A stretch of 64,000 nt of DNA from Monocercomonoides exilis PA203 (lineage: Eukaryota; Protista; Preaxostyla): the NCBI GenBank assembly GCA_001643675.2, contig LSRY02000024.1, forward strand, positions 1,116,001 to 1,180,000, read 5' to 3'. Positions 29,916 through 60,193 of the stretch are shown here, one piece after another; within the stretch, counting starts at the first letter, position 1, and every line of letters starts with the position of its first letter. Under the pieces are notes generated by a model. It was given only the letters and a program-made list of their open reading frames with translations, was not told where the DNA came from and searched no databases. The position numbers were made by a program, and so were the translations under genes.

Positions 29916-30438
29916 ACCTTTTTATCTCATTAATCATAACGTTCTTCTATTTAAAATATAATTCATATCTTGATGCAGTTCATTTTCTTTGAAATAGTTC
30001 TTCATCGTTTGCTGTCACTTCATTTTGACATATCATCTTTTAGATGGAACCTTCAGTCTAAAATTGAAAATTCATATCTTTATGAAAATACCTTGATTTC
30101 TTTTTAATAATAAGAATAAAGATTACCAATTATCAAAATGGAAAGAAATAATTTTTCTATCAATCGACAAATTATCTCTTAAAAAAAATATTGTCAAGCA
30201 ATACAATGAAAACTGAAAAATAGCAAATGATTTTTTTCCAATGATATTGTTTGGATAATATGACTTCTATCATTATCTTTCAATTTGCATTTTTTCGTTT
30301 TATTTATTATAATATGGTTATGGCATTTTTCGACCCATAAAAACTTGTATCTTTCTATTCCTGTTATTTTCTCCCTGTATGAGGCCAGGGCGCGACTTAG
30401 CCTTGACATTTTAAATATAATTTTTACATTTGCGATTT

Positions 30439-33400: not shown

Positions 33401-36400
33401 CCTCAACTTCGTGTTCTACTTGCCTCTCTTCATCATTTTCTGCATCATCATCATCATCATCGTCTTCTTCTTCTTCATCAGCATGCTCAAAATTATCTTC
33501 TTCTCTCTCGTCTTATTCTTCCTCTTGCTCTTCTTGCTCTTCTTTTTGTTCCACCTGCTCCTCTTGTGCTTCTATTTCTCCTTCTCCTTCTTCACATCGC
33601 CATTCACATTCACATTCACATTCACCACAAGTATTATATTCTTCTCTTTCTCCTTTGTCTTCCCATCATCAACGTCATTCTTCTTCTTCCTCTTTTTCTC
33701 AACACAAAAAAGAAGAAGTCAAAAGAAGCGGAAAACGAGCTATTCCACACAACAGCAGTGAAACTTCTGCATCTCAGTCATCTTTTGCCTCTCTTCCTTC
33801 TTCTCCTTGTTCTTCTTTTTCTCCTTCTCCTTCTTATTCACCTTCACCTTCACCTTCTCCCTCCTTCTCTCCTTCTCATTCAGATCCATCCACAATTGCC
33901 CTGTCTAATGCTCCTTCTCCTTTCCAGTCACTTTCTCCACTCTCTTTGTCCTCCCGCAATTCTTCTGTCTCTTCTGACAGAAATATCACAAAAGACACAA
34001 AGAAAAGGAAAGAATACAAGCAGAAACATAATCATTCGCATAGACAAGGAAAAGGAGAAGGAGGAGGAGGAGGAGAAGGAGAAATAAATAGAGAAGAAAT
34101 GAGAAGAGGAAGAGAAGCGAATGAGAGGGAAATACAAGGAAACAGCAAGGGAATAGGAAAGATGACCAAAAAGGAAGATAAATCCAATCAAAATGGAATT
34201 AATGTTGATAACAAAGAAAGCAAAGAAAGCAAAGAAAGAACAGAAAGAAGTGAAAAAGAGGAGAAAGAAGGCAAAAAGGAGAAGAAAGATATGATCGTGT
34301 CGTCCAATTTGGTTGCTTTGCTGGGGGCAGAAAACGAAGTTCGAAGATTCAAACACAAAAGTCATATGAAAGAGCAGATGAAACAAATGAAGAAGGCGAA
34401 GGAGGAAACAAGAATGAAACATGAAGAAAGCAGAAAAAGGAAAAGAGAAAGAGAGGAAAGGAGAGAAAGAAGGGAACTTAAAGAGAAAGAGAAGGAGAAG
34501 GAAAAAGAGAAAGAGAAAGAAAATGAGGAAGAAGAAGTCGAAGAGGAAGAATTTGAAGGGGAAGAAGAAGAAGAAGAGGAAGGGACAGATGAAGGAGAAG
34601 TGTTCATTGAAAATGATGAGTCAACATCTGAAGGAGAAACACTCCACGATTACCTCATCAACTCTGTCACCCCTTATCTTTCATCATCATCATCTTCGTC
34701 TTCTTCTTCTTCATCATCCTCATCCTCTTGTTCTTCTTCCTCTTCCTCCTCTTCCTCTTCTGCTTCTGCTTCTTCTGCTTCCTCTTCTCCTTGCCCTTCT
34801 TCATTCATATCGTCTCCCCCCTCTCCCTCTCGCCCTTCCTCCTCCTTAGCCTCCTCCTCTTCCACCCTCACCTCTTCCTTCTCACTCGTCTCTATGTCAC
34901 AGGGCGAGCTTATCACTTCTCCTGTTCCTTCTCCTTTCTCTCCTTCATTCACCTCCTCCACCCCGCCTTCTGCTAATCTTCTTTCTTCTGCTAATTTTTC
35001 CTCTTCTCCCTTTGCTGACACACAACTGGTGAAACATTCTCCTCCTCTTCTGATTAGAAACATCAGCAGCACAGATACTACTTCTAATAATAATACTAAT
35101 AATAACAAGACTAATGATAACACTGATGTTTCATTGCAAATGAAAATGCAAAAGGAAAAGGAAAAAGTAGAAGGAAAAGAAAATGGAAAGGACAAAATGA
35201 AATGTGAAGACAAAATGATAGAAAAGAAACATAACTTTGCATTTACAGAGCAAAGCAAAGGTATATCCACAAATTATGTTGATCATCATCGACATCATCA
35301 GAATAAGCATGAACAGAAGCATCACAATCACCACAACCATCGGAGACATAGGAACAGACACAGACACAGACGCCATTCAATCAAGAGTGCACATGATGAT
35401 GATGATGAGGAGGAGGAGGAGGAAGAAGATGGAGGAGGAGGAAGAAGGTTGAAGAGACGCAAGAAGACAAGAAGGCATAGAAGAAGCAACACAAAAGATG
35501 AAACTTCTGACAGTGAAGGCAAAGCAGGACGCAGAAGGCGTCTGACAAAGAGCCAAAAGAACAGCAACAAAAAGAAGAAGAGCCGAAAGAAATCTGACAA
35601 GTTCATGTCAAATTACATCAAGAGGTCTCGTCTGTCTCCTACTCGTGTGCGTTCCATGAGCACTCCTCCATTCACATCGCTGTGTTTCTCTCCCGCACGC
35701 TTTCGCATCCAGCCATCGCTCTATTCACCCATCTGCCACTCATTCCCTCCGGTTGCACACAAATACAATCAGAATAGAAGTTATGCAGCACAAGGGGAAT
35801 ACAACAGCAAGACTAAAGAGAAAGAAGGAGAACAATACAGTTCCAATGGAATTATTTCTTCTTCTCCTTCCTCTCCCCTTCTCTTCAGTGACATCTTCCC
35901 AGAGACTCCTTTCTGCCCCTTTGACACTCCTCTCTCGTATGTGCTCAAGATCAGCAGCCAGCCACACAAACACCACAAAACAAAGGCAGATGAAGACGAT
36001 CTCTTCGAAAGGAGAGGAGGAGGTGGTGGTGGAGGAAGCAGCAGAGGAAGACTGAAAAACGACAAAAAGAGTGCCATTTCGAGTGAAGAGAGCACTTTTG
36101 ATGAAGAAAACTCCAACCTCTTTCCAGTCTCGCCTTTCTTTTCGCCTCAGCTTCCTTTCCTCCCTTTCTTTGCCCACTCCACTGCCTATCCTTTGTCTCC
36201 TGCCTTCTCCTCTCGCTTCCTCAGCTGCTTCATCTCTCGCTCTCCTTCTTTCTTCTTCTCTGATCCTTACTCTGCCTCCTCCTCTTCTTCTTATTCTGTC
36301 ACCTCTTCCTCTCTCTTTTCTTCTGCCTCTGCAACTGCCTCTATCTTCTCCCCTTCTTTTGAGAATGGCCCGAAGACTGCTTCTTCTGTTTCCTCTTCCC

Positions 36401-38647
36401 ATTCTTCACCATCTTCTTCTCCTTCATCTTCTCTTCTCTCAAATGCTGATAGATTCTCTTCTCATTCTTCTTCACCATCTTCTTCCTCTTCCTCTTCTTC
36501 CTCTTCTTCTTCCTCCTCTTCATTTCACTCCAAACTACCTCCCAATCTCCTTCTCCACCACCGCTTCTCCTTCATCCCTTCCCTTCCTTCCTCTGTCCTC
36601 TACACCTCTCTCGTCGCCTCCTCCTTCGCCTTCCGCCCTCTCCTCATGCTGATCCCAGTGAGGTTGGGGCTGAACTCCATCAACAGCGAATATTACTCAG
36701 CCATCCTCAAATGCCTCTCTCACCCGCTTTCTGTTGGAATCGTGGGCGGAAAGCCAAGATCGTCTTTGTGGTATGTTGGAAGTTCTGTATATTTGATATG
36801 ATTGAAGAGAATAGGAGTTAATTTAGAGAAAGAGTTAATATGCTATTTGATATTTAGATTATTCTGATTATATTTTTCATACTGTTTTTTTTTTTTTTTT
36901 AATTGTCTTTTAAAATAATCTTGTTACTATTTCTTCTATTTCTTTCTGCCTTTTTTTTAATTTTTTATCTTTCAACCACTTCCCAATCAGGTTTGTTGGT
37001 TTCCAGAAGAATTCACTTTATTATCTCGACCCACACACCACACAAGAGGCTGTGACTCGTCGCATTGTGCGTGAAAGGATTGAGTATCTGTCTTCTCTCT
37101 CATCTTCTTCATCTCCTTCTCCTCCCCCTTCGTCTTCTCCTTCTCCTTCTCCTCCGCCTCTGATGAGGGCACAGCACCCACGAAGCTCTTTGTCTGATCA
37201 GCCCAAACACAACGCTGCCCTTTCCTCTGCCCCTTCTCCTCTGTCATTTCATGCACATTCATCGTCTTCTCCATCTTCTACGTTGAAGGCAATGGCTTCT
37301 GCAACTTCTTCTTCCTCTTCCTCTTCTTCTTCATCATTTTCTCATTCTTCTTATCCTCCTTCTTTGTCTTCTCCTTCTTCATTTCCACTGTCTTCCCAAA
37401 AAACAGCTGAATCTTCTCATCTTTTGAGAAATGCACAAAATGCTTCTCAAATGAAAGGCTCGCCTCTGAAAGATCAGTCTCACAGGCTCCATTTGTCTGT
37501 TCCTTCGCCTTCTTTCTCTTCCTCTTCTCTTTCTCCTTCTTCATCACCGTCAAATTCATCATCACCTTCTTCTTCTCTTCCTCTTTCAATGCAGTTGCTG
37601 TCTGTTGATTCTGCCAGAGCGACAAATACACCTCGCATTTCTGCTGAAACAACAACAACTTCTTCTACCTCTTCCTCTTCCTCTTCCTCTTCCTCTTCCT
37701 CTTCCTCTTCCTCTTCCTCTTCCTCTTCCTCTTCCTCTTCTTCATTTGCACGCAATCTATCTTCTTCTCAGCCATTTCGCTTTCCTTTCTTCATTTCAAA
37801 TATTGATCCTTCCTCTCCTTCTCCTTCGTCATCATCATCCGTTGCTTCTTCTTCTTCTTCTTCCTCCTCCTCTCATTCATCTCCACCTCCACATATTCCT
37901 CACGCATCCACTTCTTTCCCCTCCAAATCATCTCCATCATCATCAGCTTCAAACAGCCAAATAACAAACACCATTCTGAATGCCACAAAAACAGCTATTG
38001 TTCCCAAGCATTCCACACATCCCACTCAGCACCAGTCGCAACACACTCCAAAACTCACTTCAGCAAACTCACTTCCAACTAAGCTCACTTCATCTTCCAG
38101 TTCAGTTGCATTGCAGATACCTTCATCTTCATCATTTTCCTCTTCTTCCTCTTCCTCTTCCTACTCGGACTCCTCTTCTTCCTCTTCTTCCTCTTCTTCC
38201 TCCTCTCCTCGCCCTCATGTAACATATTCATCCTCCATCCTTCGCTCTCTTTCTCTCCTTCAGCCTTCGATGAACATCTCATTCCCTCTACCAACCACAC
38301 GATCGCCTTCCATTCCATATTCTTCATCTCGAAACGGTTCCTCCTCTTTTGCCGGCTCTTCTCGTGCCTCTTACACCTCCTCTTCGTTCCCACCTATTCC
38401 TCCTCTTCCGCTCTCTTCCTCTCCTCTCTACACAAACCCCTCGCCTTATTTGTCGTCCATCGGCCTTTCCTCCTTCTTCTGCCGCAAGATGAAGAAGATT
38501 GCGCTGTCCAGCGTTGATCCATCGATGATGTTGTGCTTTCTCGTCTGCTCGCGTGCTGAGCTGAGGGAAGTGAAGGAGATGTTCATGTCGATTGATTCGG
38601 GGCTGGTGAGTGTGGTGATGAAGAGGAACGACATGTACAAGGAGTGA
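30439..38647 (+). CDS. ATG4: Autophagy cysteine protease ATG4 (peptidase C54), ~2660 aa with two very large low-complexity insertions; intron 36771-36990
   Basis: Has WFTYRKHF, TSDKGWGC (catalytic Cys), QMMLAEAL, FSIHNI, LIPVRLG, GIVGGKPRSSLWFVG (after splicing), YYLDPH (Asp/His) and DPSMMLCF. Confidence 0.93.
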
Positions 38648-39589: not shown

Positions 39590-39965
39590 ACTACCAAATA
39601 ATTGAACGAATTATTGTGAACCTGATTGAAGAGTCTGAAAGTGACTGAGTATTTTACGAATTACTCAATCATTCTCCAATTTATGGAACAATTGTGATGC
39701 TGAGACAATCAACATAAATCTGTCTAAATTCATTCAATAATCCGTAATTTTTTTGCAAAATATTGTCTCAGTTTATATCTCCACTTGTGTATTGTTTAAA
39801 ACATTTTTTTTTTAAAATGATTACTTAACCCAAACTTTTCGGACAATGCTTCAACGAAAAAAATTTCATCATTTTGGTGGTTCTTTTTGATATCATAACT
39901 ATTCTTTTTAAATTTCCGAATTAACCAATTGGGTCATAATTTTTGATATCGTAACTTTGTTCGAA
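39590..39965 (-). mobile_element. Possible pogo-like relic
   Basis: Two TTTTGATATC(A/G)TAACT motifs resemble the 18057/20079 inverted repeat. Weak peptide match: EFRQIYVDCLSI versus QFKEAEIDVVTF. Confidence 0.35.
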
Positions 39966-40999
39966 GAAAGATCTTTTTTTTTATAATTGTGGAAGAAAGT
40001 GAGAAAATCAAAAATACATGTAAATAAATGAATAGAAAAAGAATGGTGATTGAATTTTTGAAAACTTAGTTAATTTGCGATTATCTTGATAATTCCATTA
40101 TAACATTTATTTATTGAGTTTTTATTTATATCAAAATTATATTGCATAACATCTCCCTTCAAGCTCAGTTATTGAATATCATTGATTAATGTTTGAGTAT
40201 AATTTAACGATATTGCTTTTTTAATGCTTTTAATAAACCATCATCTTTATATTAATAAATAATTGTTTCATTAAATTTACATACGATATAACGAGATTTA
40301 TAAATTTATATATTGTCACTTAAAACTTTATTAATGTTATGAACGATCATAATTCAATTTAGGTCGATTCGAGAGGTTGAAGAGAGGCAATATAACTTGA
40401 AAAGGAATTAAAAACTGAAATGATGTTAATGGACTTTCTGATGGAAGTGACATAATTTCAAAGAAGAATGTGAATAATGGAGAAAAAATGTGATTCATAT
40501 AATCTGTTTGATGTTTTCCTCATTATTTTTTATTTATTGATTTATTTGGCTGATGATTTATATGTTGATTTGCATGTTTGTTTGTTTGCTTGGTGGGCAT
40601 TCTGCAAGAAATGGGAGGAGGAAATGGGAGGCGGAAATGGGGGTTGTGGTGGCTGCAAAATTTTTGAGCGCTTGGCAGTGGCAAGAAAGTGATGTTGATG
40701 AAGAAGGAAAGTTGAATGAGAAATGGAGAAGGTGGCAAAGTTGAGTGAAATTCCTGTTAAAATGATGAATACGCCAAAAGATTCTGTGAGGCGTTATAGC
40801 GGCAAGAAGAGGAGAGAAGAGGGAAAAGGAGGAACGAGTTGTGTGAGAGAGCGATGGAAAGGAGGAGCTTTGGAAGGATGGTTGCAAAGGAATGGAGGAG
40901 CTGCGAAGCACGTGGACTTAATTCCAAAGAGACAAAACAGGCGATGCTACAACGTTCGTTGATGCCTTTATCTTCATCACCATCGTATTTTTTTTTCCC

Positions 41000-41202
41000 T
41001 TCTTCTTCCTCTTCCTCTTCTTCATCTTCTTCATCTTCTTCCTCTTCTTCTTCTTCTTCATCTTCTTCCTCTTCTTCTTCTTCTTCATCTTCTTCCTCTT
41101 CTTCTTCTTCTTCTTCTCCTTCTCCTTCTCCTTCTCCTTCTCCTTCTCCTTCTTCTCTTTCTCTTTCTCTTTCTCTTTCTCTTTCTCTTTCTCTTTCTCT
41201 CT
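41000..41202. repeat. Compound microsatellite (TCT/TCC)n-(CCTTCT)n-(TTTCTC)n
   Basis: Directly visible, nearly pure pyrimidine tract. Confidence 0.9.
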
Positions 41203-41841: not shown

Positions 41842-43298
41842 TCAAACATTCACAAGATAATCTGAAATATTCAAAGATAAATTAATTCAATGTTTTTTTT
41901 AAAAAAGGAACGAAATGCTTTATGAAAGCTTGCGATTGTATCTTCGTATCCTTCTTCTTCCATCTTTTCAAGCATCTTCCTTTTTGTTGCCTTTCTGTTC
42001 ACTTCTTCCATTTCATCATCCTCCTTTTCTTTCAATCTTTTCGAAACATTCTCAAAGAATCCCAAGCAATTATAAACTGCACGTTCATTCAACGTTTGTC
42101 TCTGAATCTCCACCAAAACAGTATCGACAGCTTCTCCGTTCAGCAAGTCTTCAACTTTCACAACTCTATTTTCTGATGCATTCCTCAAGGGATAAGTGCA
42201 ATAATCTATAATATCTCTGCAATTATCCTTCGCTGCTTGATATATCCGAACAATGTTTTTGAGCAGCCCAACATTATCTTTATTCTTCAATCGACAACTT
42301 TGAAAATAAATTGCACATGTTTCGACCCATCTCATCAATGCCAATTCTTCTTTCGCTTCTTCTTTGCTCATTTCCTCTTCTTTCTTCTTCCAATTCACAT
42401 TTCTTGTCAGTTCTTCCAATTCTCTTGCTGCTTCTCTTCCGAAATGCAGCTCATTCGTAATTGTATCTTCCAAAAATCCATTGTTATAAAATCTGTATAT
42501 AAAAAATTGCCAGGCAGACTGATAAGCAAGTTTTGTGAGATTTCTGTGTTTCTGCTGATGTTTGATGATTTCTGTAATTTCCTTCAAATACAGTTCTTTT
42601 TCAATTTCCTAATAAATAATGAAAGAGAAATTCAAAAACTTCAAAAATAAAAATAAGCGATTTCAAACATAAAATTTACCGATCCTGCTCAAATCCAGCA
42701 AAGCAATTTCCACTTCCTTTTGTTTCGCCTCGCTTTCCTCTTTCTTCAATGCAACTTTAAGAAGGTCAGGAATACAAATTGAAAGTAATTCCGAAGACGG
42801 AACTCCGCTGTAAAACAAAAGATTGCATTCATAAATATCAGTCAGAAGCTTTTCATTCTTTTCTTTTTCTTTCTTTTCTTCTTCTTCCGTAATCTTTTGA
42901 AATCTTTCTCCAAGCGAAGACGAATCAAAGCATGGATTCCACACGTTTTTCAGCACATTGCAATATCCAACATGTTTCAGCAGCAAAATTGTACTTTCCA
43001 TTTGAAATTTTCTTTTCTTCAATCATCTTGTTCATCTTGTTAAACATTATAATTGATGAAATAGACCGAAGTTCTTTTTTGTTCATTTCCTCCACAAGTC
43101 CGTTCATTTCTTCGATTTTCGCTTTCTGCTCGCTTTCTGTGCAATGCTCAAGTTCAGAGAACATTTCTTCAATAAATTTATTTATGATGGAAAGCGCTGA
43201 ACACTCAAAAAAAGAAAAATGAACAAACTTGAAAACTTGTTTGCAAGAGATGGCCCTTGAACGTCATCATTGGATTTATCTTCATCGCGTATTTCCAT
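41842..43298 (-). pseudogene. Expanded helical hypothetical family, copy A (3 exons, two frameshifts)
   Basis: Paralogous to the copies at 48323 and 53612 (FSELE..EQK.KIEEMN, LAYQSAWQF, EKMEEEGYEDTIASFH, DY.VNV*). Frameshifts near 43003 and 41890. Confidence 0.85.
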
Positions 43299-43539
43299 TC
43301 AACTTGTTGCGTGAATGATCAATTTGTGCGTAACAGTATATTTAAAACAAAAAACAAAAAATAAACCATTGATGATTGTTGACAAAACAAAGATAAAGGC
43401 CAAACTCAATTCCTTTGATTAGTTAAAAAATAAATGTGAAATCGAAATCACAAAAAAGCCAACGGTATTAGCAGTATATAGCCAAATACTAAAGAATTTT
43501 ATTTCTTTCTGATCGAATCAACAATAATTTATTTTTAGG

Positions 43540-44550
43540 ATCTGGATGGCATTTCGAATGAAAACTTGAACGAATTGAGAAATACCCCACATATTTGCTG
43601 TTGAATGAAAATACATATGTATTTTTATTCCAACATTCTGAGTGGAACAAAGAAGGGGAAATTTTGTGCTTTTTTGAACTTTTCAAAAAAGTGACAAAAA
43701 AGCAACAGTTTGTTCATTAATCATGCGCACACTTCATTCTCCTCCAAATTAAAATTCAAACATAAATATTACACTTATTTCCCTCACATTTAGAGTTATT
43801 TGGAAGCTTTGCTTCATCGAAATGATTTTTTCTGTTATTTCAGAGTGTTTGCTTGTTTCCGTGAATGTTTCAAATAAAATGTGTTGAGAAAAGTTTTGAG
43901 ATATCTCGATAATTTTATAATTAGTTGCTTTCTTGAGTGGGTTGTTCAAGCTGAAGGAAGATTGGGAGGGAATCATACTTTCGACAATTCACATTTTTTT
44001 GATGATTGGGCGCATGATAATTGAACGCATAAGAGAATTTATCAAGGCAACAATGGACAGCATCGTTTATTGAGCATTGAAAGAGATTCTATTCCAAAAA
44101 GCTTTGAGGCTGAGCGAAGATGAAAGAATTCGAGATGGCAAAGGGAGATTGATGCAATATGCGGAACCAAGCTCATGCGGAATTTTGAGTACGTTTAAAT
44201 CTGTTAAAAACTTCATGGTGATGCCGCTTGACGTGTATTTATCTGTTAAGACGCTTGTTACGTTTTTCGGAAAATCATCATTTTTGGTTGTTTTGATGGT
44301 AATCATTGTTTCACCGATTTCTGTGTGGATTTCGAGGAAAACCTTGAAGCTACATGGGAGAAGAAGAAACGAATCAAAAAGACGGAACAGATAACGATAG
44401 AAATGTTTGATTTAATTAAGGTGTGTTATCCAATTTATGAAACAATTTTGCATTTTTTTATAATAATTAGAAAGAAGGAAATCATAAAATAATATAAAAA
44501 TAACTCAAACTTTTCAGAAATGATAATTTCATGTTTTCATTTTCATTTTT

Positions 44551-44586
<36 letters not shown>

Positions 44587-45190
44587 TTCTTTTCTTTTCT
44601 TTTATTTGTTTTGATGTTTCATCACTATTCTTTTGATTTTAGTTAATAAAAAATAAATGGTTGGGAAGAAATGATAAAAGGCAGACTGCTTCAATCAGAG
44701 AGGCGAGAAGTCGAGCATTTTTTTTAAAAATGGTATTGCCTCATTTGTAACTTCATATTTTTCTTTTTCTCTGTATTCTTTTCTTTGATAATTTTTTGGT
44801 TAATTTTGCGAATTTTAAAAATATGATTCACTCAAAAACGGATTCGTCTTGCAGATCCTTATCAATTCAGACTCAGCAACTTGCAGTAACTTGCGAAGGC
44901 ATTCACCCTCATCGAGCTTGTTGGCCTATGTTTTTTTTTACAGCATCTGCCTTTGAATGTGCCTTTTTTGTTTCTTTCCATCAAAATCGTTGAATCGCTC
45001 TGTTCATTGCTGAACAGCAGATGGATGGAGAGAAGAAGCATTAACAGAATGGAGATGCTGATGCAGTCACCAGGGTTTGCTGACAGATGCGAAGGGAAAG
45101 AAGGAGAAGAGGGAGAAGAGGAGGTTAGAGTTATCAGTTCGTTTGAAGAGGAAGTGAAGGAAGTGAATGGAAGAGATGAAAAGAAATGAA
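43540..45190 (+). pseudogene. Decayed intron-containing ABCC/MRP transporter TMD1, head-to-head with copy A
   Basis: Reads ALKEILFQKALRLS..R..GKGRLMQY, MPLDVYLSVKTLVTFFGKSS..VSPISVWISRK, EMFDLIK|intron 44421-44642|LIK.NGWEE and SINRMEMLMQS in ABCC order, with stops and frameshifts. Confidence 0.75.
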
Positions 45191-46999
45191 GAGGAAATGT
45201 TGAAAAAAAAGAGAATACGAAAAAGACGAGAAAGACAGAAAGACAGAAATAAATAAAGAGGAAATATGATGAATGTTTGGATGAATACAAAAAACTCGAT
45301 GGAAGAAACAATAAAAAACACTTTTCAATAGAAGAGCAGAAATGCTATTTGGATGGGAAAAGCAATAGATTTCATTCAAAAGGGGAAGGAAAGGCTTGTC
45401 AAAAAGAGCGAAAGAAATGAAAGGAAAAATCGGGAAATGATTCATTTTATTGGAGAATTAGGTGAAAAGTGGAATATTACTTGCTAATTTCAAATTATTT
45501 TAATGATAAAAATCTTGCTTTTCATTTGAAAAAGAAAAATCTTCTCTTTTTATTTCATTTCTGTTCTTTTTTTTTTTATTTAATTTTTTTCTGTTAAGAG
45601 CAATAAAATAAAAATTAATTCTTTCATGGATTTTTTCAAAAAGTTATTCATAGAACTTCTTCAAAGATACTTCAAAACGAAGGGATGACTATTAAATGCT
45701 GGCTAACAACATTAACATTGAACTACAACAATATAATCAAAAAATTTAGATAATTATCTCGATTTTCCAATTTTCTTTTAAAAAATTGCTTTTCAATCCA
45801 TTCAACAAAAAAAGAAATTCGCTCGTTGAATGTATCAAAAACGCAAAGTTTTTAAAAAATGACAAAAATAAATATTTTCTTTTTAATAATTAATAAATAA
45901 TTTCATTAAGAGAACAAAAGAAAACTATTTCTTTCGATTTCAACTGAAGGAAAGAGATGAGAAACACTAAAGTACAATTTTGAAAGTCATTCAAAGATAA
46001 AAAAAGAAAAAATTTCAAAGAAAGAGAGAGAGAGAAAGAAATGAAAAATTTAACAAACAAAGCCAGAAACTAATTCACAACATTCAAAAAATTGAAGCAT
46101 CAAGGTACTAAGCAGTCTAAAAAAAATGAAAGAAAGAAAAAGAAAAAGAACATGAAATCTTATTTTTCGTTCTTCAAATGAAATTTCTTCCGCTTCGCGT
46201 CTTTCCTTAATATAAATTCAATTCTTTTTTCATTTCCGTTTCATTTCATTTCTTTTAATGAAATCTCACAATTTCTTTCATTAACTCCAACAATTCTCTG
46301 AAATATGCCATTTCTTCAAATCTTTCTCTCTTTCTCTCTTTCTTTCATCCAATACGAAAACGATTTCCTTTTCTTCAATGCATTTTTATATACTTCAATT
46401 TTCCCTGTTCAATCAGAAAATCTTTGTTTTCAGCACAAATGAACAATTTCCAGTGAAATTTCTACAAACAACAGAAGATGCTGAAGGAAATGGCATAAAT
46501 AAAACAATCCTTTTGAAACAAATTCCCTTCAATTAGCTTTCTCTCTCTCTCTCTTTCAACATGCGTTTGTTCAACACTCATCATTTTGTTCTTCATTTTC
46601 CTTCTTCCTAATTTCTTTCCTTCTTTCTTTCCTTTTTTTTCTTTCCTTTCTTTTCTCTTTCTCTTCAGATGCATCAGTTTCTTTGAAATATTCTCTACCC
46701 ATTTTCATATCTTCTATTTGATTATTCGGATAAAGGAGATGCAATATTTTTTTTATATAAATCCATTCATATTCGTCTCTAATTCATTTCCTTGTAATCC
46801 TTCTCCATTCAACACAGAAGAAGAAGAAGAAGAAGATGAAGGAGAAGATGAAGGAGAAGATGATGATGATGAAGAAACAGATAGAATGGAAGGAGGAGGT
46901 GGAGGTGGAGGAGGAGGAGAAGATGTTTAAGAATAGGAAGAAGAAGAAGATGATGAAGTTTGTGCTGAATGATCAGAATGCAACACAATAACAGTATTC

Positions 47000-47850
47000 G
47001 CAAACAGAATTCATTCATCAGCAGATATGAAGAAAGAACGAAAGAACGAAAGAACGAAAGAACGAAAGAGAAGCTGAAAGAGAAATGGAATGAAATGAGT
47101 TGGATGGAGCTCTTCTGGAGGAAGTTGAGCGACAAATGTGGACAAGACTCATTTGAAGAAAATGAAGACACAATGAACAGATACGAATTTCATAACAGCC
47201 AACAGCAGCAACAGACAGCAGTTTCATTGTGTGTTGCAACATGAGAATTTGATGGCTATTCAAACAACAAAATTCTCAAATAACAAGAGGATGTTCTTTT
47301 CATCAACCATGCAAAAATATCATCAATGAAGAGATTGAAGGAGAATGAGAAGAAACCATATAATCTTCAAAAATGCTGCTTGAAATGGATTGTTCCTGTG
47401 AATGACACTCAACATGAAAAATGCTGTTGATTGGAATGGAAAAATGATTAAAAAAATACATAAAATTGTTTGTTTTGCATTTATTAAAAAAACTCCTGAA
47501 AAATACAGACATACCATTCCAATCACAAATGCAGAAGATTGTCCAACCACTGTGCTGTCAATCTCCTTTTCCATTGTTTCGCAGTGCTTCTTTCTCCATC
47601 ATCCTTTTCCCCCTAAATATCCTGCTTTCGTTAATGCTTTAAACTGTCTGTTCAAATGAAATATAACTTTGTTTTTTTCTTTCCAAGTGCTTTCCAATTG
47701 TTGACATTCCTTTTCGCTCTCATCAAAATGCTTTTCAATCGAATATGTTTTCTTCCCTTGTTCCAATTGAATTCAAAAAAATATGCAATTCCCATCTGCT
47801 GACTGTATGTCGACATTCGGCATTCTTCTGATGTTCTCCTTAGAAAAACA
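47000..47850 (-). pseudogene. Decayed membrane-protein gene, probably ABCC N-terminal part, head-to-head with copy B
   Basis: Hydrophobic segments. LEQGKK..LESTWKEK is lasso-like and HQILMLQHTMKLLS resembles KEILFQKALRLS. Many stops. Confidence 0.4.
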
Positions 47851-48322
47851 AAAAAATGGCCATTTTTAAAATCTATCAGATTCTTGGGCTCTGAAAAGAT
47901 GGTTTATAAAAGAATCTTCAAAACAAACAAGAACAATAAAAAACGCATACATGTGAATATTTTGATTTTCAAAAAAATGTTGAATTTCCTTTAAAGATAC
48001 TTTTCATAAAAATCATTTCGCACAATTCCATCATCAATTCCCCGCCGTCGCTGTCTCGTTCCAACGCACAAAATAATATCGCTAATTCCGCAGAAAACAT
48101 CTGCTCATCCATCTCTCATTTCAACAAGGAATATTTTTGTTTTTTCAAATCTGATGATCTGTATATCCATTACTGCATACAAGAAATAAGATTTTTCGTT
48201 TTTTTCTTTCTTTGTTTGTTTATAACGCCTTGCCAAATATCACCAACAACGCAGAATGGTATAACAACTTATGCTTTCATGATTATTTTGAGTTAATATT
48301 TTGCGCCGATTTCTTCTTTCCA

Positions 48323-49814
48323 ATGGGATCCGAATTCAAATCAAATGACGAATTTTCGTTGTTTTCTGTCTGCAATGTGCTTTCAAAAATGCAGTCAACG
48401 AGTAGAATCAAAAGGTTTAATGGTTTGTGCTTGTTATTGCATTAAAATTCATGATTATTGCGATTTAATTTATTCTTTATTTATTTGAAGAATTGTTTTG
48501 TGAACTGGAGCGTAGCAATGAAGATGAACAGAAACAGAAAATTGAGGAAATGGATGAAATGATTAATGAAATGAATGAAATAGAATTAAGATCAATTTCC
48601 TCGAAAATACTCTTCAATAAAATTCACCAAATGATTGAAGAAAGGAAATTGTTATTGGAAAATGCAATCTTGTTGTTGAAGAATATTGGATATTGCAAAG
48701 TTATAAAAAATAATTGGCTTTCCGGTTTTCAAGAGACTTCATTGAACAAAATATTTGAGAAGATGATTATTGAAGAAGAAAAGAAAAAAGAAGAAAAGGA
48801 CGAAAAGCATTTAGCTGATCTTTATGAATGCTTCATATCTTTGAGCTTCGATTTCCCACAAGGATTAATTTTAATGTGTGTATCTTGTCTTCTGAAAGTT
48901 GCATTGAAGAAAGAAGAAGATAAGGAAACACAAAAAGAAGTGGAAATGGCTCTTTTGGCATTGAGTTGCATTTACTCACATTATGTTTAAACATTTTTAT
49001 TTTATTTTTAACGTTTTTGAATTTCTTTTCTTTTTTTAAAGAAAATTCAACAAAAACAGTTCTTGAAGGAAATCAAAGAAATCATCAAATATCATCAGAA
49101 ACATCACAATCTGACTCAACTCGCCTATCAGTGTGCTTTGGACTTTTTGATTTGCAGATTGAATGCCGACGGAATCTTGGAAGAAGTTATTGTGAATGAA
49201 CTGCATTTTGGAAGAGAAGCAACAAGAGAATTGGAAGAACTGATAAAATGTGTGAATTGGAAGAGAAAAGAAGAAGAGAATGAAAAGAGAAGAAAAGAAA
49301 CGAAAAAAAAGAGCTTATTTTGAGAAGATGGCTCCAAACATTGAACATTTTATTTTCCTCATGCAAATTGTGGAACGAAGAACTTGCAAAGCTAATAGAC
49401 TGCATTGTGAGAGTATTTCGAGCATCTAAAGATTATTACATAGAAATTTACTATCAGAGTATTGATACATTGGAAAAGATAACGGATAAAAGAAATGTGA
49501 AAATTGATGCATTGCTGAAGAGCGGAGCTATTGATGCTGTTTTTTCGGAGATTCAGCGACCAACACTGAATTACAAAACAGAATTTCTTTGCTTGCGATT
49601 CTTTATGAATATTTCAGAAAGACTAAAAGACGCGGAGAAAGATGAAAAAGAAGAAGCGAAAAGAAACCCAACCAAAATGGAGATATTTGAAAAGATGGAA
49701 GAAGAGGGATACTTAGATACCATTGCAAGCTTTCATGAAGTTTTTGATTTTCTCAACGAACATTATTTGAATGATTTATCGTTGGATGTTTCTGATTATT
49801 TTACGAATGTCTGA
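48323..49814 (+). pseudogene. Expanded helical hypothetical family, copy B (3 exons, one frameshift in an A8 run at 49303-49310)
   Basis: Same motifs and intron positions as copies A and C. The frameshift could be a homopolymer sequencing error. Confidence 0.8.
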
Positions 49815-50199
49815 GGAAATGGTGCGTTTCATATTTTGTAATTCAAAAATGAAATATTTTTTTTTTTTTATCGGTTGATGATTTTTCAAAACTTTGAATA
49901 TGTTTTCTTTATAAAAGCGGAATTTTTTAAATAGATTATCTAACATTTTTTCTGATTGTTCTGTAAATGTTTGAGGAAATGAGATGAAATTTATTCTGTA
50001 AATCAAAATTATTTTTTATTTTTCTTTCAGCATCGTATCACAATTCTGCAAACCTCGAGCGAGTTTTATATCTTTGTTTGTTTTAGATTTTGTGAAATGA
50101 TAAAAATATTCATTAAAATCTTATTTCAAAAGCCGGTTTTTTATAATTTTGAAACGGAGCAAAGCAAAAAAAATGAAGAGAAAGAAGAAGAAGAATATG

Positions 50200-50621
50200 A
50201 AGATGACGACGAAAGAAGAAGAAGAAGAAGGTGAAGCAGAAGGTGAAGCAGGTGAGGAAGAAGAAGAAGAAGAAGAAGAAGAAGAAGAAGAAGAAGAAGA
50301 AGAAGAAGAAGAAGAAGAAGAGGAGGAGGAGGAGGAGGAGGAGGAGGAGGAAGAAGAAGAAGAAGAAGAGAAAATTGTAGAGGGGAGGAAAGAGACGGAG
50401 GAGGTGTAGAAAGTGGAGGAGGAGATAATGGAGAAGAAGAAGAAGAAGAAGAAGAAGAAGAAAATGATGATGATGAGGAGGAGGATCCAAACGAGGAGAA
50501 GGAGAAGGAGAATGTGGAGGAGGAAGAGAAAGAAGGAGAAGAAGAAGAAGATTCAGAGGAAGATGAAGACGAAGATGACGATGAAGATGAAGAAGATGAA
50601 GATGAAGAAGAAGAAGAAGAA

Positions 50622-50654
<33 letters not shown>

Positions 50655-51300
50655 GGACGAGGTGAACGAATGTTAGATGAATATGATGTGCCAGAAGCAT
50701 TCGATGGAGAAGGAGAGCGGGCAGACGAAGGAGGAGGAGGAGGAGAAAACGAAGAGTACGAAGAAAAAGAGGAAGGAGAAGAAGGAAGCACCTGGAAGAA
50801 TGAGCGGGCTGTTGATTGAAGAGAAAGCGAGGTGAAAGGAAAGACGGCAGGAGAAGACGAAGGTTTTGGAGAAGTTGGAGGGAGCGGTGAAGAAAAAGGA
50901 CGGAGCGACGTGAACGGAGAAGAAGGGCTTTGAAGTGAAGGCGATGGAGATGATGAAGCGAATGAACGAGGAGAAAGAGAAGAGGAGAAAGTGGAAGAAG
51001 AAGAAGAAGAATGAGAAAGAGAAGAAGGAGAAGAGGAGGAGGAGGAGGAGGAGGAGGAGGAAGAAGAAGAATTTGATAAGTTAATATTCATATCAGCTTT
51101 TTCAATGGAAAGTGGGTAATAAAAAGATGAAGAAGAAAAAGATGATGATGAAAAGGAGGAAGAGGAAGAGGAAGAGGAATTTGAGGAAGAAGGAGAAAAT
51201 GATGAAAGAGAAAGAGAAGGAGAAAGAGAAGGAGAGGGAGAGGGAGAGGGAAAGGATGAGGAATAAGAGGAGGAAGAGGAAAAGGAGGAGAAAGAGAGAA
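50200..51300. repeat. Long purine-rich (GAA/GAG/GAT)n low-complexity tract (poly-Ser on the minus strand)
   Basis: Includes about 20 perfect GAA units at ~50258-50320, followed by GAG and GAT runs. Confidence 0.9.
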
Positions 51301-51949
51301 AAGGCAGCTTGGTTGATTTGGAGATGAAGAAGAAGGATAACGACATTTGCAATGAAGGTGATGTCAGCGAAGTGTCAATCGAAGAAGATGAGTGTTGAAT
51401 TACATGAGAAGTTGTTTATCTTTTGAATGTGAATGCCCAGCCAGCCCATCTGCTCCGACAAAAGAGTCGCTTCTGCCAAACACTCTCATTACAAATATCC
51501 CAAACAAACTGCTTCTTCTTTTTCAAGCTCATGTCAAGCATTGTCAGGCTATGCAGCATTCAAAGCAAATGGCAGAAGTCACGAATGCCATCGTTGAGTG
51601 CAATCCAAACAATAGATAACCTCAAAACTTCTGAATCTTTCGTGAAATGAAAAGAAGATTTCTTTCCATGGAATTCCTGTTCATGGCCAATCTGTATTCA
51701 TTGAAAAAACATCTTTAAAGAAAAATGAATGAAATAAAAAAAAGTCAAACCATTTTGTTTTTTGGCCTTGAAATATTTTCCCATCTCCAATGGATTGGTA
51801 ATTATCAGCCCAGATGGCTTTCTTGTTCTCCAAAATTTCCTCTTGCCACATTTTAAAAAATCAGATAACAAAACAACAAATGGCTGGCAAAGAACATCAT
51901 TGAAGGAAGAGAATCTATCTTCAGTCATGTCATGATATCAGATGAAAAC

Positions 51950-53400
51950 ACACATTCTCCACTCCTTCTTTTAACTGACTGATAATTCTAACCTCTTCTT
52001 CTTCTTCTCACCTTCTCATCTGCAAACAGACTCGGCTGACTGCAGAAACATCTCCAATGTGTTTGCATCTGCTTTCTTCAATTTGGATTCTCTCCATTTA
52101 TTTTCTTAACGATTTCGACAATTCAGATGGAAGGAAACAAGACAAACACTTTCAAAAGGCAAATGTTGTCAAAAGCTCAATGAAATAAATAAGATGAATA
52201 TGAGCGCATTCACAAAGCGATTGAATGTTGCTTCAGATGGAATTGATGAGAAGCTGCAAGAAGAAACAGTTTATGAGCGAAGGTTCATAAAAGCTTGAAA
52301 ACAAATCAAAAAATAGAAAAAGAAGAGAAAGACAATAGAAAAAGAAAGTGTAATTGAAAATGTGAAATTATTATTGTCCAAAAAGAATAAGTAATTTTTT
52401 ATATTTTTTATGATTTCTTTCTTTCTTTCTTTTTCTTATGTTAATTTTTCAAAAAAAAAAAACATTGCAAATGCAACAATAAATTGGATAACACACCTTA
52501 ATTAAATCAAACATTTCTATCGTTATCTGTTCCGTCTTTTTGATTCGTTTCTTCTTCTCCCATGTAGCTTCAAGGTTTTCCTCGAAATCCACACCGAAAT
52601 CGGTGAATCAACAATAACCATCAAAACAACCAAAAATGATGACTTTCAATAGAATGCAACAAGCGTCTTTACAGATAAATACATATTATGTGGCAATCAC
52701 ATAAAACAATTAATGTATTGAAATGAACTTAAAAATTCGATTGTAATTTGATTCCAATATTGCAATAATCTCCCTTTGCCATCTCAAATTCTTTCTTCTT
52801 CTCTCAGCCTCAAAGCCTTTTGGAATAAAATCACTTTCAATGCTCAATAAACGATGCCGACCATTGTTGCCTTGATAAATTCTCTTATGCGTTCAATTAT
52901 CATGCGCCCAATCATCAAAAAAATGTGAATTGTCGAAAGTATGATTCCCTCCCAATCTTCCTTCAGCTTGAACAACCCACTCAAGAAAGCAACTAATTAT
53001 AAAATTATCGAGATATCTCAAAACTTTGATCAACACATTTTATTTGAAACATTCACGGAAACAAGCAAACACTCTGAAATAACAGAAAAAATCATTTCGA
53101 TGAAGCAAAGCTTCCAGATAACTCTAAAATGAGTGCAAAAATTGAAATGCTAATGCTTAATGCAGTGATGTGGCATGCACCTAATTAATGAACAAACTGG
53201 TGCTTTTTTGAAGCTTTTTTGAAAAGTTCTTTTCAAAGTCCTTTCGCTTCTTCTTCATTTGCTCAGAATGTTGGAATAAAAATATATATGTATTTTCATT
53301 CAACAGCAAATATGTGGGGTATTTCTCAATTCGTTCAAGTTTTCATTCGAAATTCAATCCATTTCCATGAAATGGATTATTGTTGGTTCGATCAGACAGA
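51950..53400 (-). pseudogene. Second copy of the decayed ABCC TMD1, head-to-head with copy C
   Basis: Reverse-complement paralog of 43540-45190. Reads LEMFLQSAE (ABCC R..FL..E motif) and has the same GTGTGT donor at 52496. Confidence 0.75.
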
Positions 53401-53611
53401 AAATAAACTCTTTTGTATTTTGCTAAATACGACCAATATTGCAGATTCTTTGTAATTTCTTTTTTAACACAGAGTTTTACTGAGCAAAGGAATTGAGTTT
53501 GACAATTATATTTTAATTTTGTCAATTATCAACAATGGTTTATTTTTTGTTTTTTGTTTTAAATATACTGTTACGCACAAATTGATCATTAACGCAACAA
53601 ACAGAATTGAA

Positions 53612-55056
53612 ATGTGCAATAAAGACAAATCAAATGATGATAATCAGGAGATGTCATGCACAGATAAGTTAAATAGTTTGCATAAATTGCGTATTTTCAA
53701 AGATTTCATGTTATATGTTTTTTGATGATCGAGGAAGAATTGTTTTCTGAACTGGAGAATTGTCCGGAAAGCGAGCAGAAAGTGAAAATCGAAGAAATGA
53801 ACGGACTTGTGGAGGAAATGAATGAAAAAGAATTCAAATCAGTTTTCAACACAGAATTGTATGATAAAATATTCAAAATGATTGAAGAAAAGAAAGTGTC
53901 AATGGAAAATACAATTTTGCTGCTGAAACATGTTGGATATTGTAAAGTTCTTTTGGACTGGTTCAGTTATGCCTTTAAAAGTTCTTTGCTGAGCAGAAGG
54001 TTTGAGAAAATGCTTGTTGATGAAGATAAGAAAAATGAAGAAAAGAACGAAAAGCTTTTAGCTGACCTTTGCGAATGCTTTATTTTGTTTGACCATTGCT
54101 TATCATCAGAATTGGATTTAATTTGTATTCCTTGCCTGATGAAATTTGCCTTGAAGAAAGATGAAAGCGAGGAGACTCGAAAAGAAGCGGAAATGGCTTT
54201 GTTAGCATTGAGCAGCATAAGGGATAATGTGTGTGAAATTCAATTTCCTTTATGAAATCAGAAATTTTATTCTTTATTTTTTTAAAAGTTTGTCGAACAA
54301 GAACTTTATCTGAATGATATCAAAGAAATCATCGAATATCATCAAGAACACAGAAATCTGACACGACTTGCCTATCAATCTGCTTGGCAGTTCTTAACAG
54401 ACCGATTTTTTATTGACAATAGCTTGGATGGAGAGATTGTGAGTGAACTGCATTTCACAAGAGAGGCAGCAAGAGAGCTGGAAGATCTGTCAAAGTGTGT
54501 GGATTGGAAGAAAGAGAAAGAAGAGGAAAAGGAAAAAGAAACGAAAGAAGAGCTTGTTATCGAGAGATGGTTCGATGAAATTTTTAATTTTTTGTACTTA
54601 AACGCATTGTGGATAGAAGAATTTGCTGGACTTATTGGAGGAGTTGTACTGGTGTATCGAGCAGCAAAAGGGAATAATGAGAAGATTGGCAGAGAATGTG
54701 TTTTTGTATTTGAAACGGCAGCAGAAACTAGAAGTGTGGACGTTGAAGAGCTTCTTAAAGGTGGAGCTGTTGATGTTGTTTTGGAGGGAATGCAGAGACA
54801 AACATTTAATGAAGGCATGACAAGCAAATGCTTACAATTCTTTACGACTATTTCAAGACGATTAGAAGAAAAGAAGAGGGATGATAAGGAAGAAGAGGAA
54901 AGAAAGGCAACGAAAAGGAAGGTTTTTGAAAAGATGGAAGAAGAAGGATACGAAGATATCATCGCAAGCTTTCATAAAATATTTGAGTTACTCAAAAACA
55001 AACATCAAGACTATAGATTATCGTTGAAAATTTCTGATTATTTTGTAAATGTTTGA
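53612..55056 (+). CDS. Expanded helical hypothetical family, copy C (intact, ~440 aa; introns 53676-53737 and 54229-54288)
   Basis: The exons splice to an uninterrupted frame MCNKDKSNDD...LFSELENC...SDYFVNV*. Confidence 0.85.
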
Positions 55057-58183: not shown

Positions 58184-60193
58184 GGGTCATCTTTTTATTG
58201 GCACTTTTTTCTTTATTGGTACCAAAATTTTTTGAAATGAAAAAAAAGTTAAAAACACATCAAAAAAATACAAAACTCGAATCAATTACTCTTCTCACTT
58301 TTCTCTTTCCATTTTCACGTTCAAAGGTGTCAAATTCATCACTTGTTTCATCGTCATCATTCTTAATTTTTCTGAATTTTCTTTTCACTTTTTTCTCCAA
58401 AGGCAATTCTTCTTCTTCAATTTCCTTTTCTTTTTCTTCAGTTTCTTCAATTTTCATCTTGTGCTTTTCATTATATTCATCCCATTCATCAAGAAGTTTT
58501 TCTTTAGTTATTTCTTTTCCGAAGAAGTCGAAACAATGTGAATGAGAAGGAATGAAGTATTGAGAAGACTGAGGTAGCTTCATTAGAACAGATCCAGATC
58601 CATTGCTGAGGACTCCGCTGTTGATGAACGTTTTTTTGATCACCGATGGGGTGAATGCTGTGTGAAGGGCTTGTGGCAACACGTCTGCAACAGCTGTTCT
58701 TTTTGAAGATGAGTATGTGGATGATGGAGAGCTGTAATTGTTTGATAGCTCTGACTTCAATACTGCAAATACGCCTCTGTCCAGCGGCTTCGATATGTGC
58801 GTGGTGTGTGGAACGAAGGTGACGACGTCAATTTCGGCTTCCTTGAACTGTCTCCATATCGTTGGATCTGCCCGCGATGAGTGTGAATCCAGGAGAAGAA
58901 GGCAACGATGAGTTTCTTTAAGAATTCGCTTTCTTCTGTCAATGATAGCTGGCAGCAGGACTGTTAAGGTGTATTTTTTGAATGCTGTTTTGTCCATCCA
59001 GCCGTTTGTGTTTGGCCAAATGTCAAGCGACGGCGTTAACAGTGTTGTCAGTTCTTTCGGAAGATTTGCACTCGGCCACAGCACGACAGACGGAAGCGAG
59101 AAACCATCAGCAGCAATTCCAGCAACGAGAGTAGCATTCGGCATCCTTTCGGCAGTCTTTTTGAATCCAGCTTGTTCATCTGCTGGATGAACAACAATAC
59201 CACGTGTAGAAGTTGGAATTCGAAGCGAAGATTCATCTATATTGAAGATTAGTTCCTCTGGATATTTATTTTCGTCGTGTAATGCTTGTAATTCCGTATA
59301 CCACGGCTTTAGGACTTTCTGACAAGATGCTGCAAGTCTGTTAATATCAACTTGCTTTGGAAGTGATGACTTCAATTCCGGATGGCGCTTTATGAAGGCG
59401 TGAACCGTCTTTAGAGTAACTGTCTTTTTTATTTTTTCTTCATTTTCTCCTTCTTCTTCACTATCGTTAATTATATTTTCCATCTAAATACCAATTAATA
59501 TACAATTCAAATATTAATTACAAACCAGATCGCGCGCTTTTCGTAATGTGAGGCTTGTCCCAGATCGAGATTCTATTGTAACTTCTTCCAAGAATTGTTT
59601 TTCTTTTTCGCCGCTGATAATTGGCGGGTGCCCAACTTTTGCAATCGGCCTGCCGTTTTTTATGGCTTTAACTGCGTGCTCCAAAGATTTTTTGCTGATT
59701 CCTCCATATTTAACGCCGTCTTCCAGCCTGACAACATTGTCATTAACAATGTGCGCAATCCTTTCCAATCTTGAACTATATTTTCTGTAATGTAATGTAG
59801 GCATTGCTTCCTTCAGCCGCTTCTGCGCCGCTTCAGCTTTCTTTTTCACTAGCAATTTCATATATATATAATGTGAAATGATCGTTAATAAATTTTTTTA
59901 TTTATTAATTCTCATTAAAGAATTTTTAATTAATATTTAAATTTTTGAATGAATTAGAAATATTTACAAACCTTGGTGCAGTCCAATTTCTCACGAAAGC
60001 TCAATGGAAGGACTTGAACCCCCCCATTTCCCCCCCATGAGTAATTGGATTTCTTTCAAAATTCAAATATTAGAATACTTGACATTTGTATATATACCGA
60101 AAATATATTTTAAAATATTATTTGTGGGTCAGATTAATTTTTATTTAAAAAAAAGAGCCAATAAAGAAAAAAGTGCCAATAAAAAGATGACCC
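58184..60193 (-). mobile_element. Intact pogo/Fot1-like DNA transposon (2010 bp), 36-bp perfect TIRs, TA target duplication
   Basis: TA|GGGTCATCTTTTTATTGGCACTTTTTTCTTTATTGG at the left end and its exact reverse complement followed by TA at the right end. Confidence 0.95.
58260..59861 (-). CDS. DDE_1 (pogo-like) transposase, DD35D, ~519 aa, 2 exons (42-nt intron 59525..59484)
   Basis: Catalytic motifs FNIDES, LLLDSH and PLDRGVF, with 35 residues between D2 and D3. CTG|gtttgt...tttag|ATG joins an HTH-like N-terminal exon in frame. Confidence 0.93.

Follow-up and report, generated by a model that had tools for sequence, protein, structure and literature searches.

Primate core duplicons (NPIP, NBPF, TBC1D3) are fast-evolving gene families that are copied together with fragments of neighbouring genes. 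Pack-MULEs and Helitrons capture fragments of host genes, introns included, and carry them in tens of dispersed copies. Within Monocercomonoides exilis itself, PMC6759080 describes birth-and-death families (Rab7L, cathepsin B and tyrosine kinases), which are lineage-specific expansions with intact and disrupted copies mixed. The locus described here resembles each of these in part. It lies in a window of 64,000 nucleotides (the whole stretch of DNA that was analysed, positions 1116001 to 1180000 of contig C19; the genome searched comprises 82.3 Mb in 101 contigs), and consists of three members (A, B and C) of a very large M. exilis gene family, two of which, A and C, stand head-to-head with the stop-ridden remains of an ATP-binding cassette (ABC) transporter gene of the ABCC (MRP) type. 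The combination of family gene, intergenic region and ABCC relic, referred to below as the cassette, is best explained by duplication of a divergent gene pair with a hitch-hiking pseudogene and differential decay of the two partners, and not by a new mobile element, a reading to which we give a probability of roughly 0.65.

The likeness to core duplicons lies in the lineage-specific core common to many dispersed DNA-level duplications, the decaying pieces of neighbouring genes, the mosaic of copies with nested and variable ends, and the gene conversion. The M. exilis units differ in being only 2–5 kb long, in belonging to a far larger family (about 1,100 copies in the 82-Mb genome of a unicellular anaerobe), and in having a 5′ flank that is more conserved than the gene. 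As in Pack-MULE and Helitron capture, a host-gene fragment with introns is found in tens of dispersed copies, but terminal inverted repeats were not detected, the unit has variable ends, no autonomous partner was seen, and the gene aboard is of host type, intact and under selection. Full ABCC/MRP transporters have the order TMD1-NBD1-TMD2-NBD2 (TMD, transmembrane domain; NBD, nucleotide-binding domain). Homology places the relic in the exon-1/TMD1 part of an ABCC subfamily of M. exilis, but it contains TMD1 only, its start codon is lost or useless, it carries frameshifts and stops, and it evolves neutrally. The mixture of intact and disrupted copies in a lineage-specific expansion is shared with the birth-and-death families of M. 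exilis, whereas the scale is not: there are about 1,130 motif matches and 333 protein clusters here, and the largest family named by Karnkowska et al. 2019 (PMC6759080) is that of the tyrosine kinases, with 332 members.

The three paralogs and the relics beside A and C

The features of the locus, in window coordinates, are:

41842–43298, minus strand: family copy A (MONOS_4767), three exons, A-type exon 1, two frameshifts
43299–43647, no strand: divergent intergenic region of 349 bp, from the start codon of A to the former ABCC start codon; candidate bidirectional promoter
43648–45300, plus strand: ABCC relic beside A, with an exon-1 remnant, two TMD1 exons, a mini-exon and two introns
45301–45816, no strand: non-ABCC flank beyond relic A, common only to the closest cassettes (C48:410988, C48:270706 and C62:125956)
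46990–48390, plus strand: B-type upstream module, 1.4 kb, non-coding, dispersed, not ABCC-derived
48323–49814, plus strand: family copy B, with a different exon 1 and a single frameshift in an A8 run near 49320
52004 to about 53256, minus strand: ABCC relic beside C, with TMD1 exons, numerous stops and the ATG still in place
53257–53611, no strand: divergent intergenic region of copy C
53612–55056, plus strand: family copy C (MONOS_4770), exons 2 and 3 open

The correspondence of A to MONOS_4767 and of C to MONOS_4770 was established by tblastn of the database proteins. An initial annotation of this DNA had described three paralogs with identical intron positions. The three copies were confirmed, and a five-way DNA alignment showed that exon 2, intron 2 and exon 3 are common to A, B and C, but exon 1 of B is not homologous to exon 1 of A and C. 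Homology between A-type and B-type units stops inside intron 1, near 43177, and the two types of unit therefore differ in both first exon and promoter. Only the cassette has the A-type first exon and the intergenic region of 349 bp. In copy A, exon 2 has gained 1 nt near 43000, and a 2-nt insertion near 41890 alters the C-terminus; the homopolymer frameshifts in A and B could be assembly errors. A and C are inverted neighbours, 8–10 kb apart.

In the five-way alignment, the former ABCC start codon of relic A falls at about 43648, where the ATG has been lost in A and is retained in C and at locus L020. An acceptor near 43790 is followed by a TMD1 exon (43791–44425, KALRLS ... EMFDLIK) that ends in the donor AAG/GTGTGT, then by an intron with a (TTTC)n tract and a mini-exon at about 44646–44725 (NGWEEMIKGRLLQSERREVEHFF). 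A second intron with the acceptor TTGCAG/ leads into a second TMD1 exon, which begins at 44856 and runs into an acidic linker. Homology to ABCC ends near 45300, and no similarity to NBD1, TMD2 or NBD2 was found beyond this point. The flank that follows (45301–45816) is the trace of a further duplication, which took place after the unit had been truncated. Since both former introns are retained, copying occurred at the DNA level, as had been proposed from the surviving donor.

The ABCC identity of the relics was recognised because a DNA search of the genome with 43400–45400 uncovered a dispersed repeat (the best 40 of 102 candidates were all significant), some copies of which lie about 3 kb upstream of ABC_membrane matches on the same strand. 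In tblastn with the TMD1 exons of the ABCC genes on contigs C64 and C15, relic A scored E 1e-65 (82% amino acid identity) and E 2e-54 (68%), respectively, and relic C scored E 3e-45 and E 5e-37. The relics and the ABCC TMD1 region are 73–78% identical in DNA over 1.1–1.6 kb, and the large exon of the C64 and C15 genes matches ABCC2, ABCC5 and MRP1 in the PDB at E 1e-116. The stretches beside A and C are ABCC-derived pseudogene fragments comprising TMD1 only. The initial annotation had reached the same identification from the motifs KALRLS, EMFDLIK and NGWEEMIKGRLLQSERREVEHFF in the correct order, and had named a lack of significant ABCC matches at 43540–45190 as the result that would speak against it; the tblastn match of E 1e-65 is to this region.

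A chance resemblance in AT-rich, stop-ridden sequence was considered, as several searches returned little or nothing. The Pfam model ABC_membrane (PF00664), which had been suggested as a check, gave no match within 43540–45190, either with the open reading frame (ORF) pieces of the relic or in a six-frame search of the genome, and tblastn of 17 other ABC genes, all from other ABC subfamilies, reached E 0.003 at best. When a 105-aa ORF of the relic was searched against PDB sequences, GABA receptors ranked first and ABCC2 appeared only at E 3–4. The homology is visible only against the right paralogs, but there the amino acid identity of 68–82% (E 1e-54 to 1e-65) and the matching DNA identity, to genes that are themselves similar to ABCC2, ABCC5 and MRP1, leave chance with virtually no probability, and we regard it as refuted.

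Sequence-level analyses covered 11 cassettes (A, C and L020–L028) and seven B-type units. Frameshifts and stops are present in the TMD1 exon of all 11 relics aligned. Several lesions recur, namely a 1-nt deletion (9/11), a stop at codon 150 (7/11) and a stop at codon 133 (5/11), although they are not strictly nested, and because these lesions are common to many copies the relic was dead before most of the copying took place. Copy-specific substitutions are spread evenly over the three codon positions (39/38/37), and the NG86 ratio is much the same in frame (0.55) and out of frame (0.59), so that coding constraint on the relic was rejected.

Dispersal of the cassette and states of the gene pair

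A genome search with a 9-kb query gave continuous alignments through gene, intergenic region and relic at 20 loci besides A. A 26-nt motif from the ABCC TMD1 has 54 matches on 30 contigs, compared with none in the control. Among the 54 are three open-frame ABCC genes (C5, C15 and C64), and cross-matching among the matches listed placed a family gene at the expected offset, on the opposite strand, at no fewer than 31 of the 54. The corresponding 26-nt motif of the family (the KMEEEGYE region, allowing up to three mismatches) has 1,133 genomic matches, compared with 19 for the reversed control; relic-bearing members thus make up about 5% of the family.

These counts bear on two earlier proposals. 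The bipartite cassette that had been put forward as the amplifying unit does exist as a colinear unit at 20 further loci, with the TMD1 motif at 54, but it is not the general unit of the family. The initial annotation had also allowed that most members might lack the relic, in which case only a local segmental duplication would be left; about 95% do lack it, and the unit is nonetheless dispersed on 30 contigs. A merely local inverted duplication within the window would fit the position of A and C as inverted neighbours that exchange sequence, as well as the large relic-free majority of the family. It is hardly credible in view of the 20 further colinear loci on other contigs and the spread of the TMD1 motif, and we consider it refuted.

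The loci fall into a series of states:

C64 (L018, C64:22000–29999): all ABCC ORF segments open; no upstream match to the family gene
C15 (L019, C15:31000–38999): ABCC ORF segments open, but the frame shifts once within the acidic linker; family gene in four frame-shifted pieces
C27: ABCC near-full-length, with stops; family gene present
C59 and C41 (C76 likely alike, from the genome search only): relic extends through NBD1; family gene present
A, copy C, L020, L021 and L022: relic of TMD1 only; family gene present

C64 and C15 carry apparently full-length, two-half ABC genes. The C15 gene changes frame in its linker (L019, 3566–3620), where its C64 paralog runs on without a break; an intron, an early lesion or an error of assembly could be responsible. 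The earlier picture, in which the orphan gene stays intact and the transporter decays, describes the usual outcome, but the reverse is found at C15, where the family gene is broken and the ABCC frames are open, and at C64, where the ABCC gene is open and its upstream region has no match to the family gene.

The ends of the unit are not fixed. The flank beyond 45816 is common to A and L022, a different flank is common to L020 and L021, and the ends vary on the gene side too. Inverted matches between candidate ends are at most 9–11 nt long and were equalled in 22–159 of 200 shuffles; Helitron-type ends were not specifically searched. No enzymatic domain encoded by the cassette was found with Pfam. 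The initial annotation had likewise found neither terminal inverted repeats nor a transposase for the unit, and its suggestion of an unrecognised mobile unit is not borne out, the ends being variable, the ABCC truncations nested, the inverted repeats no better than chance and no enzyme encoded. Some break points fall in GAA-rich tracts (the ABCC acidic linker, 46800–46990 upstream of B, and 40990–41200 downstream of A), which is a lead and not a result, as alignments tend to stop in such tracts anyway. Long GAA/GAT-rich tracts flank family units in the window at 46800–46990, 40990–41200 and 50140–51350.

The gene family, its second 5′ flank and the rest of the window

Exons of A, B and C were searched individually, while work on full-length sequences relied on database proteins (P0002 and others). 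In the genome, the exon-3 ORF of A yielded 1,956 first-look candidates. The best 150 of these all have E < 1e-68 and 50–70% amino acid identity, and are almost all open over about 254 aa; contig C48 (658 kb) alone carries at least 25 of the best 150. A profile search of 1.84 billion representatives returned 333 protein clusters at 50% identity. An M. exilis origin was found for 10 of 10 clusters sampled and for all 120 listed matches of a word search, every one an uncharacterised protein. In Pfam, the family proteins match no family, and no ARM or HEAT model reaches threshold. An AlphaFold2 model of the 441-aa member P0002, made with a 40-sequence alignment, is all-helical with a pLDDT of 82, and its best PDB matches by Foldseek are designed armadillo repeat proteins, at weak scores (E 5e-4, TM 0.4–0.5). 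The family is likely to be restricted to M. exilis and to consist of proteins of about 440 aa with a predicted all-helical, armadillo-like fold.

The ratio of nonsynonymous to synonymous divergence (dN/dS) between family copies is 0.2–0.75. Because reading frames are open at 25–30% divergence, the copies are individually under selection, and they are host genes rather than decaying transposon copies. The family is probably larger than that of the 332 tyrosine kinases, and term searches of two M. exilis genome papers (PMC8767320, PMC6759080) turned up no description of it. Family genes also lie directly upstream of two ABC genes of other subfamilies, in the same orientation (L011, C10:1273500–1280500; L015, C19:1296000–1304500); given some 1,100 genomic copies, this adjacency may be due to chance.

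Copy B, beside which a weaker ABCC relic had been reported, has a quite different upstream region. No ABCC similarity was found upstream of B by tblastn with the TMD1 exons of C64 and C15 and with the 17 other ABC genes, and the position is occupied by the dispersed, non-coding B-type module (46990–48390). This module gave 966 first-look candidates, the best 40 of which are 76–85% identical and occupy the same position relative to family genes. A possible coding role for the module was rejected, as there is no three-base periodicity and no ORF common to the copies. It is preceded by the acidic C-terminal tail (...EEDDEVCAE) of an upstream reading frame with a stop near 46973, and in other copies this frame belongs to the repeated unit itself. 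The B type is the commoner 5′ flank of the family, and perhaps half of the copies have it.

Otherwise the window carries ordinary eukaryotic genes (tubulin, PP2C, GH3, ATG4 and a DDE_1 transposase), and an Rfam scan of the window at gathering thresholds was empty. The transposase is a 407-aa, pogo-like ORF with a DDE_1 endonuclease domain (E 1e-13) at 58260–59483 on the minus strand, 3 kb beyond copy C. The front of the Peptidase_C54 (ATG4) domain lies in a 2,123-aa ORF (30430–36801, plus strand) and its end in the next ORF, of 531 aa (37052–38647, plus strand). A separate repeat of about 1.2 kb (39930–41200), with copies 85–86% identical at C27:146562, C39:129346, C7:1635519 and C15:433092, abuts the low-complexity tract downstream of copy A.

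Divergence of flank and gene, and the origin of the cassette

The neutral relic has, oddly, diverged less than the gene beside it. Divergences and trees were computed on concatenated exon columns. Averaged over the 55 pairs of cassettes, the TMD1 exon of the relic shows a raw divergence of 0.165, and the gene one of 0.264 overall (0.314 at third positions; mean dN 0.276, mean dS 0.60). In every one of the 55 pairs it is the relic that has diverged less, even when set against dN. The seven B-type units show the same gradient, with an identity of 0.874 just upstream, 0.778 in exon 1 and intron 1, 0.704 in exon 2, 0.686 in exon 3 and 0.572 in the 3′ untranslated region, and in each of the 21 pairs the upstream region (0.81–0.87) is more identical than the exons (0.69–0.70). 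As copies were picked by similarity to A or B, absolute identities are biased, but the ordering within units is not explained by this bias.

Gene and relic share part of their ancestry: their divergences are correlated (Spearman 0.40, p 0.003), and a clade of L022 and L027 appears in both the gene tree and the relic tree. Relics A and C are 82.5% identical overall and contain identical runs of 167, 116 and 87 bp. Gene conversion has occurred between them, since a run of 167 bp was reached in none of 20,000 shuffles of such an alignment. With modest confidence, the gap between flank and gene may be attributed to ectopic conversion whose strength peaks in the 5′ flank and declines into the gene, or to gene bodies exchanging with a family pool that is much larger and more varied; mutation associated with transcription is another explanation. 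Recent conversion between the gene bodies of the neighbouring loci L021 and c48 was not supported by a whole-length comparison (78% identity overall).

We infer the following order of events. The family would expand by intron-retaining, DNA-level duplication of segments of 2–5 kb, with the copies kept by selection. In one lineage, a family member would have come to lie head-to-head with an ABCC (MRP-type) gene, 349 bp away, with the intergenic region perhaps serving as a shared promoter. Duplication of this divergent pair with variable end points would then have produced about 50 dispersed copies, in each of which one partner decayed. This would usually be the transporter, truncated to TMD1 and NBD1 or to TMD1 alone, the latter state ending in the acidic, GAA-rich linker as in A, C and their closest kin, and the dead stub would have been copied onward together with the family gene. 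At a few loci the transporter would have survived and the family gene decayed. Repeated segmental duplication is favoured because the ends are variable, the truncations are nested and flanking sequence is common within sub-lineages; colinear copies also keep their introns and intergenic DNA, as such duplication would have them do.

Several observations weigh against this account. In the five-way alignment, the cassette's intergenic region and exon 1 have no counterpart upstream of the apparently full-length ABCC genes, and for this reason it is only plausible that the arrangement at C15 and C64 is ancestral. Only the C64 copy of the ABCC gene looks fully open, that of C15 changing frame in its linker. 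In the trees, gene A groups with L020 and L023 and relic A groups with C, and none of 200 bootstrap trees recovers the A-type genes as monophyletic, yet the branches with strong support do not by themselves exclude a single origin. Because the two genealogies conflict, joint copying can be only part of the history. For plain segmental duplication, a spread of about 50 copies over 30 contigs is wide. The outer ends were inspected in few copies, and target-site duplications or Helitron-type ends could still be present. The promoter of family genes in the cassette sub-lineage may also derive from the ABCC gene, which the initial annotation had offered as one possibility.

The stronger conservation of the relic would also be accounted for if the stub were retained because it serves the family gene as a promoter or enhancer, supplies its first exon or gives rise to a divergent non-coding transcript. 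It would then be no accident that the relic is the less diverged partner in 55 of 55 pairs, that no unit but the cassette has this first exon and these 349 bp of intergenic DNA, or that the non-coding B-type flank is equally over-conserved in 21 of 21. However, the conservation is even over 1.5 kb and equal in two unrelated types of flank, which argues for a regional process, and long identical tracts beside stretches of 78–85% identity are a signature of conversion. The length of the relic varies from TMD1 alone to TMD1 with NBD1, and its copy-specific changes follow no codon-position constraint, an argument that excludes coding constraint only. Retention for function is, on balance, unlikely. 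It is quite unlikely, too, that the 5′ modules are the recombination-initiating, regulatory ends of a diversification system, in which ectopic conversion that starts in them keeps the flanks uniform while more than 1,000 armadillo-like gene bodies are shuffled and diverge faster than the neutral DNA beside them; if true, an intracellular protein family of a gut commensal would be diversified in the manner of contingency genes.

The cassette could instead be a non-autonomous mobile element (a Pack-MULE, a Helitron-like element or an unknown class) with a captured ABCC fragment and the family gene as cargo. Its presence at 54 loci on 30 contigs, the content of an intron-containing fragment of an unrelated host gene, as in known captured fragments, the pogo-like DDE gene 3 kb from copy C, and the 35% unclassified repeat given in the genome paper (PMC8767320) can all be cited for it. 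Set against this, inverted matches at the ends are no better than in shuffles, variable and nested ends occur on both sides, further flank is common within sub-lineages in the way of segmental duplications, and there is no enzymatic domain. Moreover, the gene that it carries has about 1,130 copies, most of them without a relic, and most copies are open at 25–30% divergence, as befits selected host genes. A mobile element is accordingly a distinctly improbable explanation, and duplication of a divergent pair with differential decay is preferred.

As an instance of segmental duplication with pseudogene formation, the finding is ordinary in kind; its value lies in the size and novelty of the family and in the anomalous divergence of flank and gene. 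The M. exilis genome consists of 46% repeats, 35% of them unclassified, and expanded gene families are suspected among these (PMC8767320). The undescribed family, which is under selection, explains part of this unclassified fraction. Its presence also carries a warning for annotation, as dozens of short 'ABC-like' or orphan ORFs beside family genes are pseudogene debris. The loci form a natural series, from both partners open, through truncation of one, to a stub copied onward, that shows how divergent pairs are resolved after duplication. Finally, the dead ABCC stub is a neutral yardstick, against which the adjacent genes, silent sites and introns included, look two to four times too diverged, and it makes region-specific gene conversion or mutation directly measurable in M. 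exilis.

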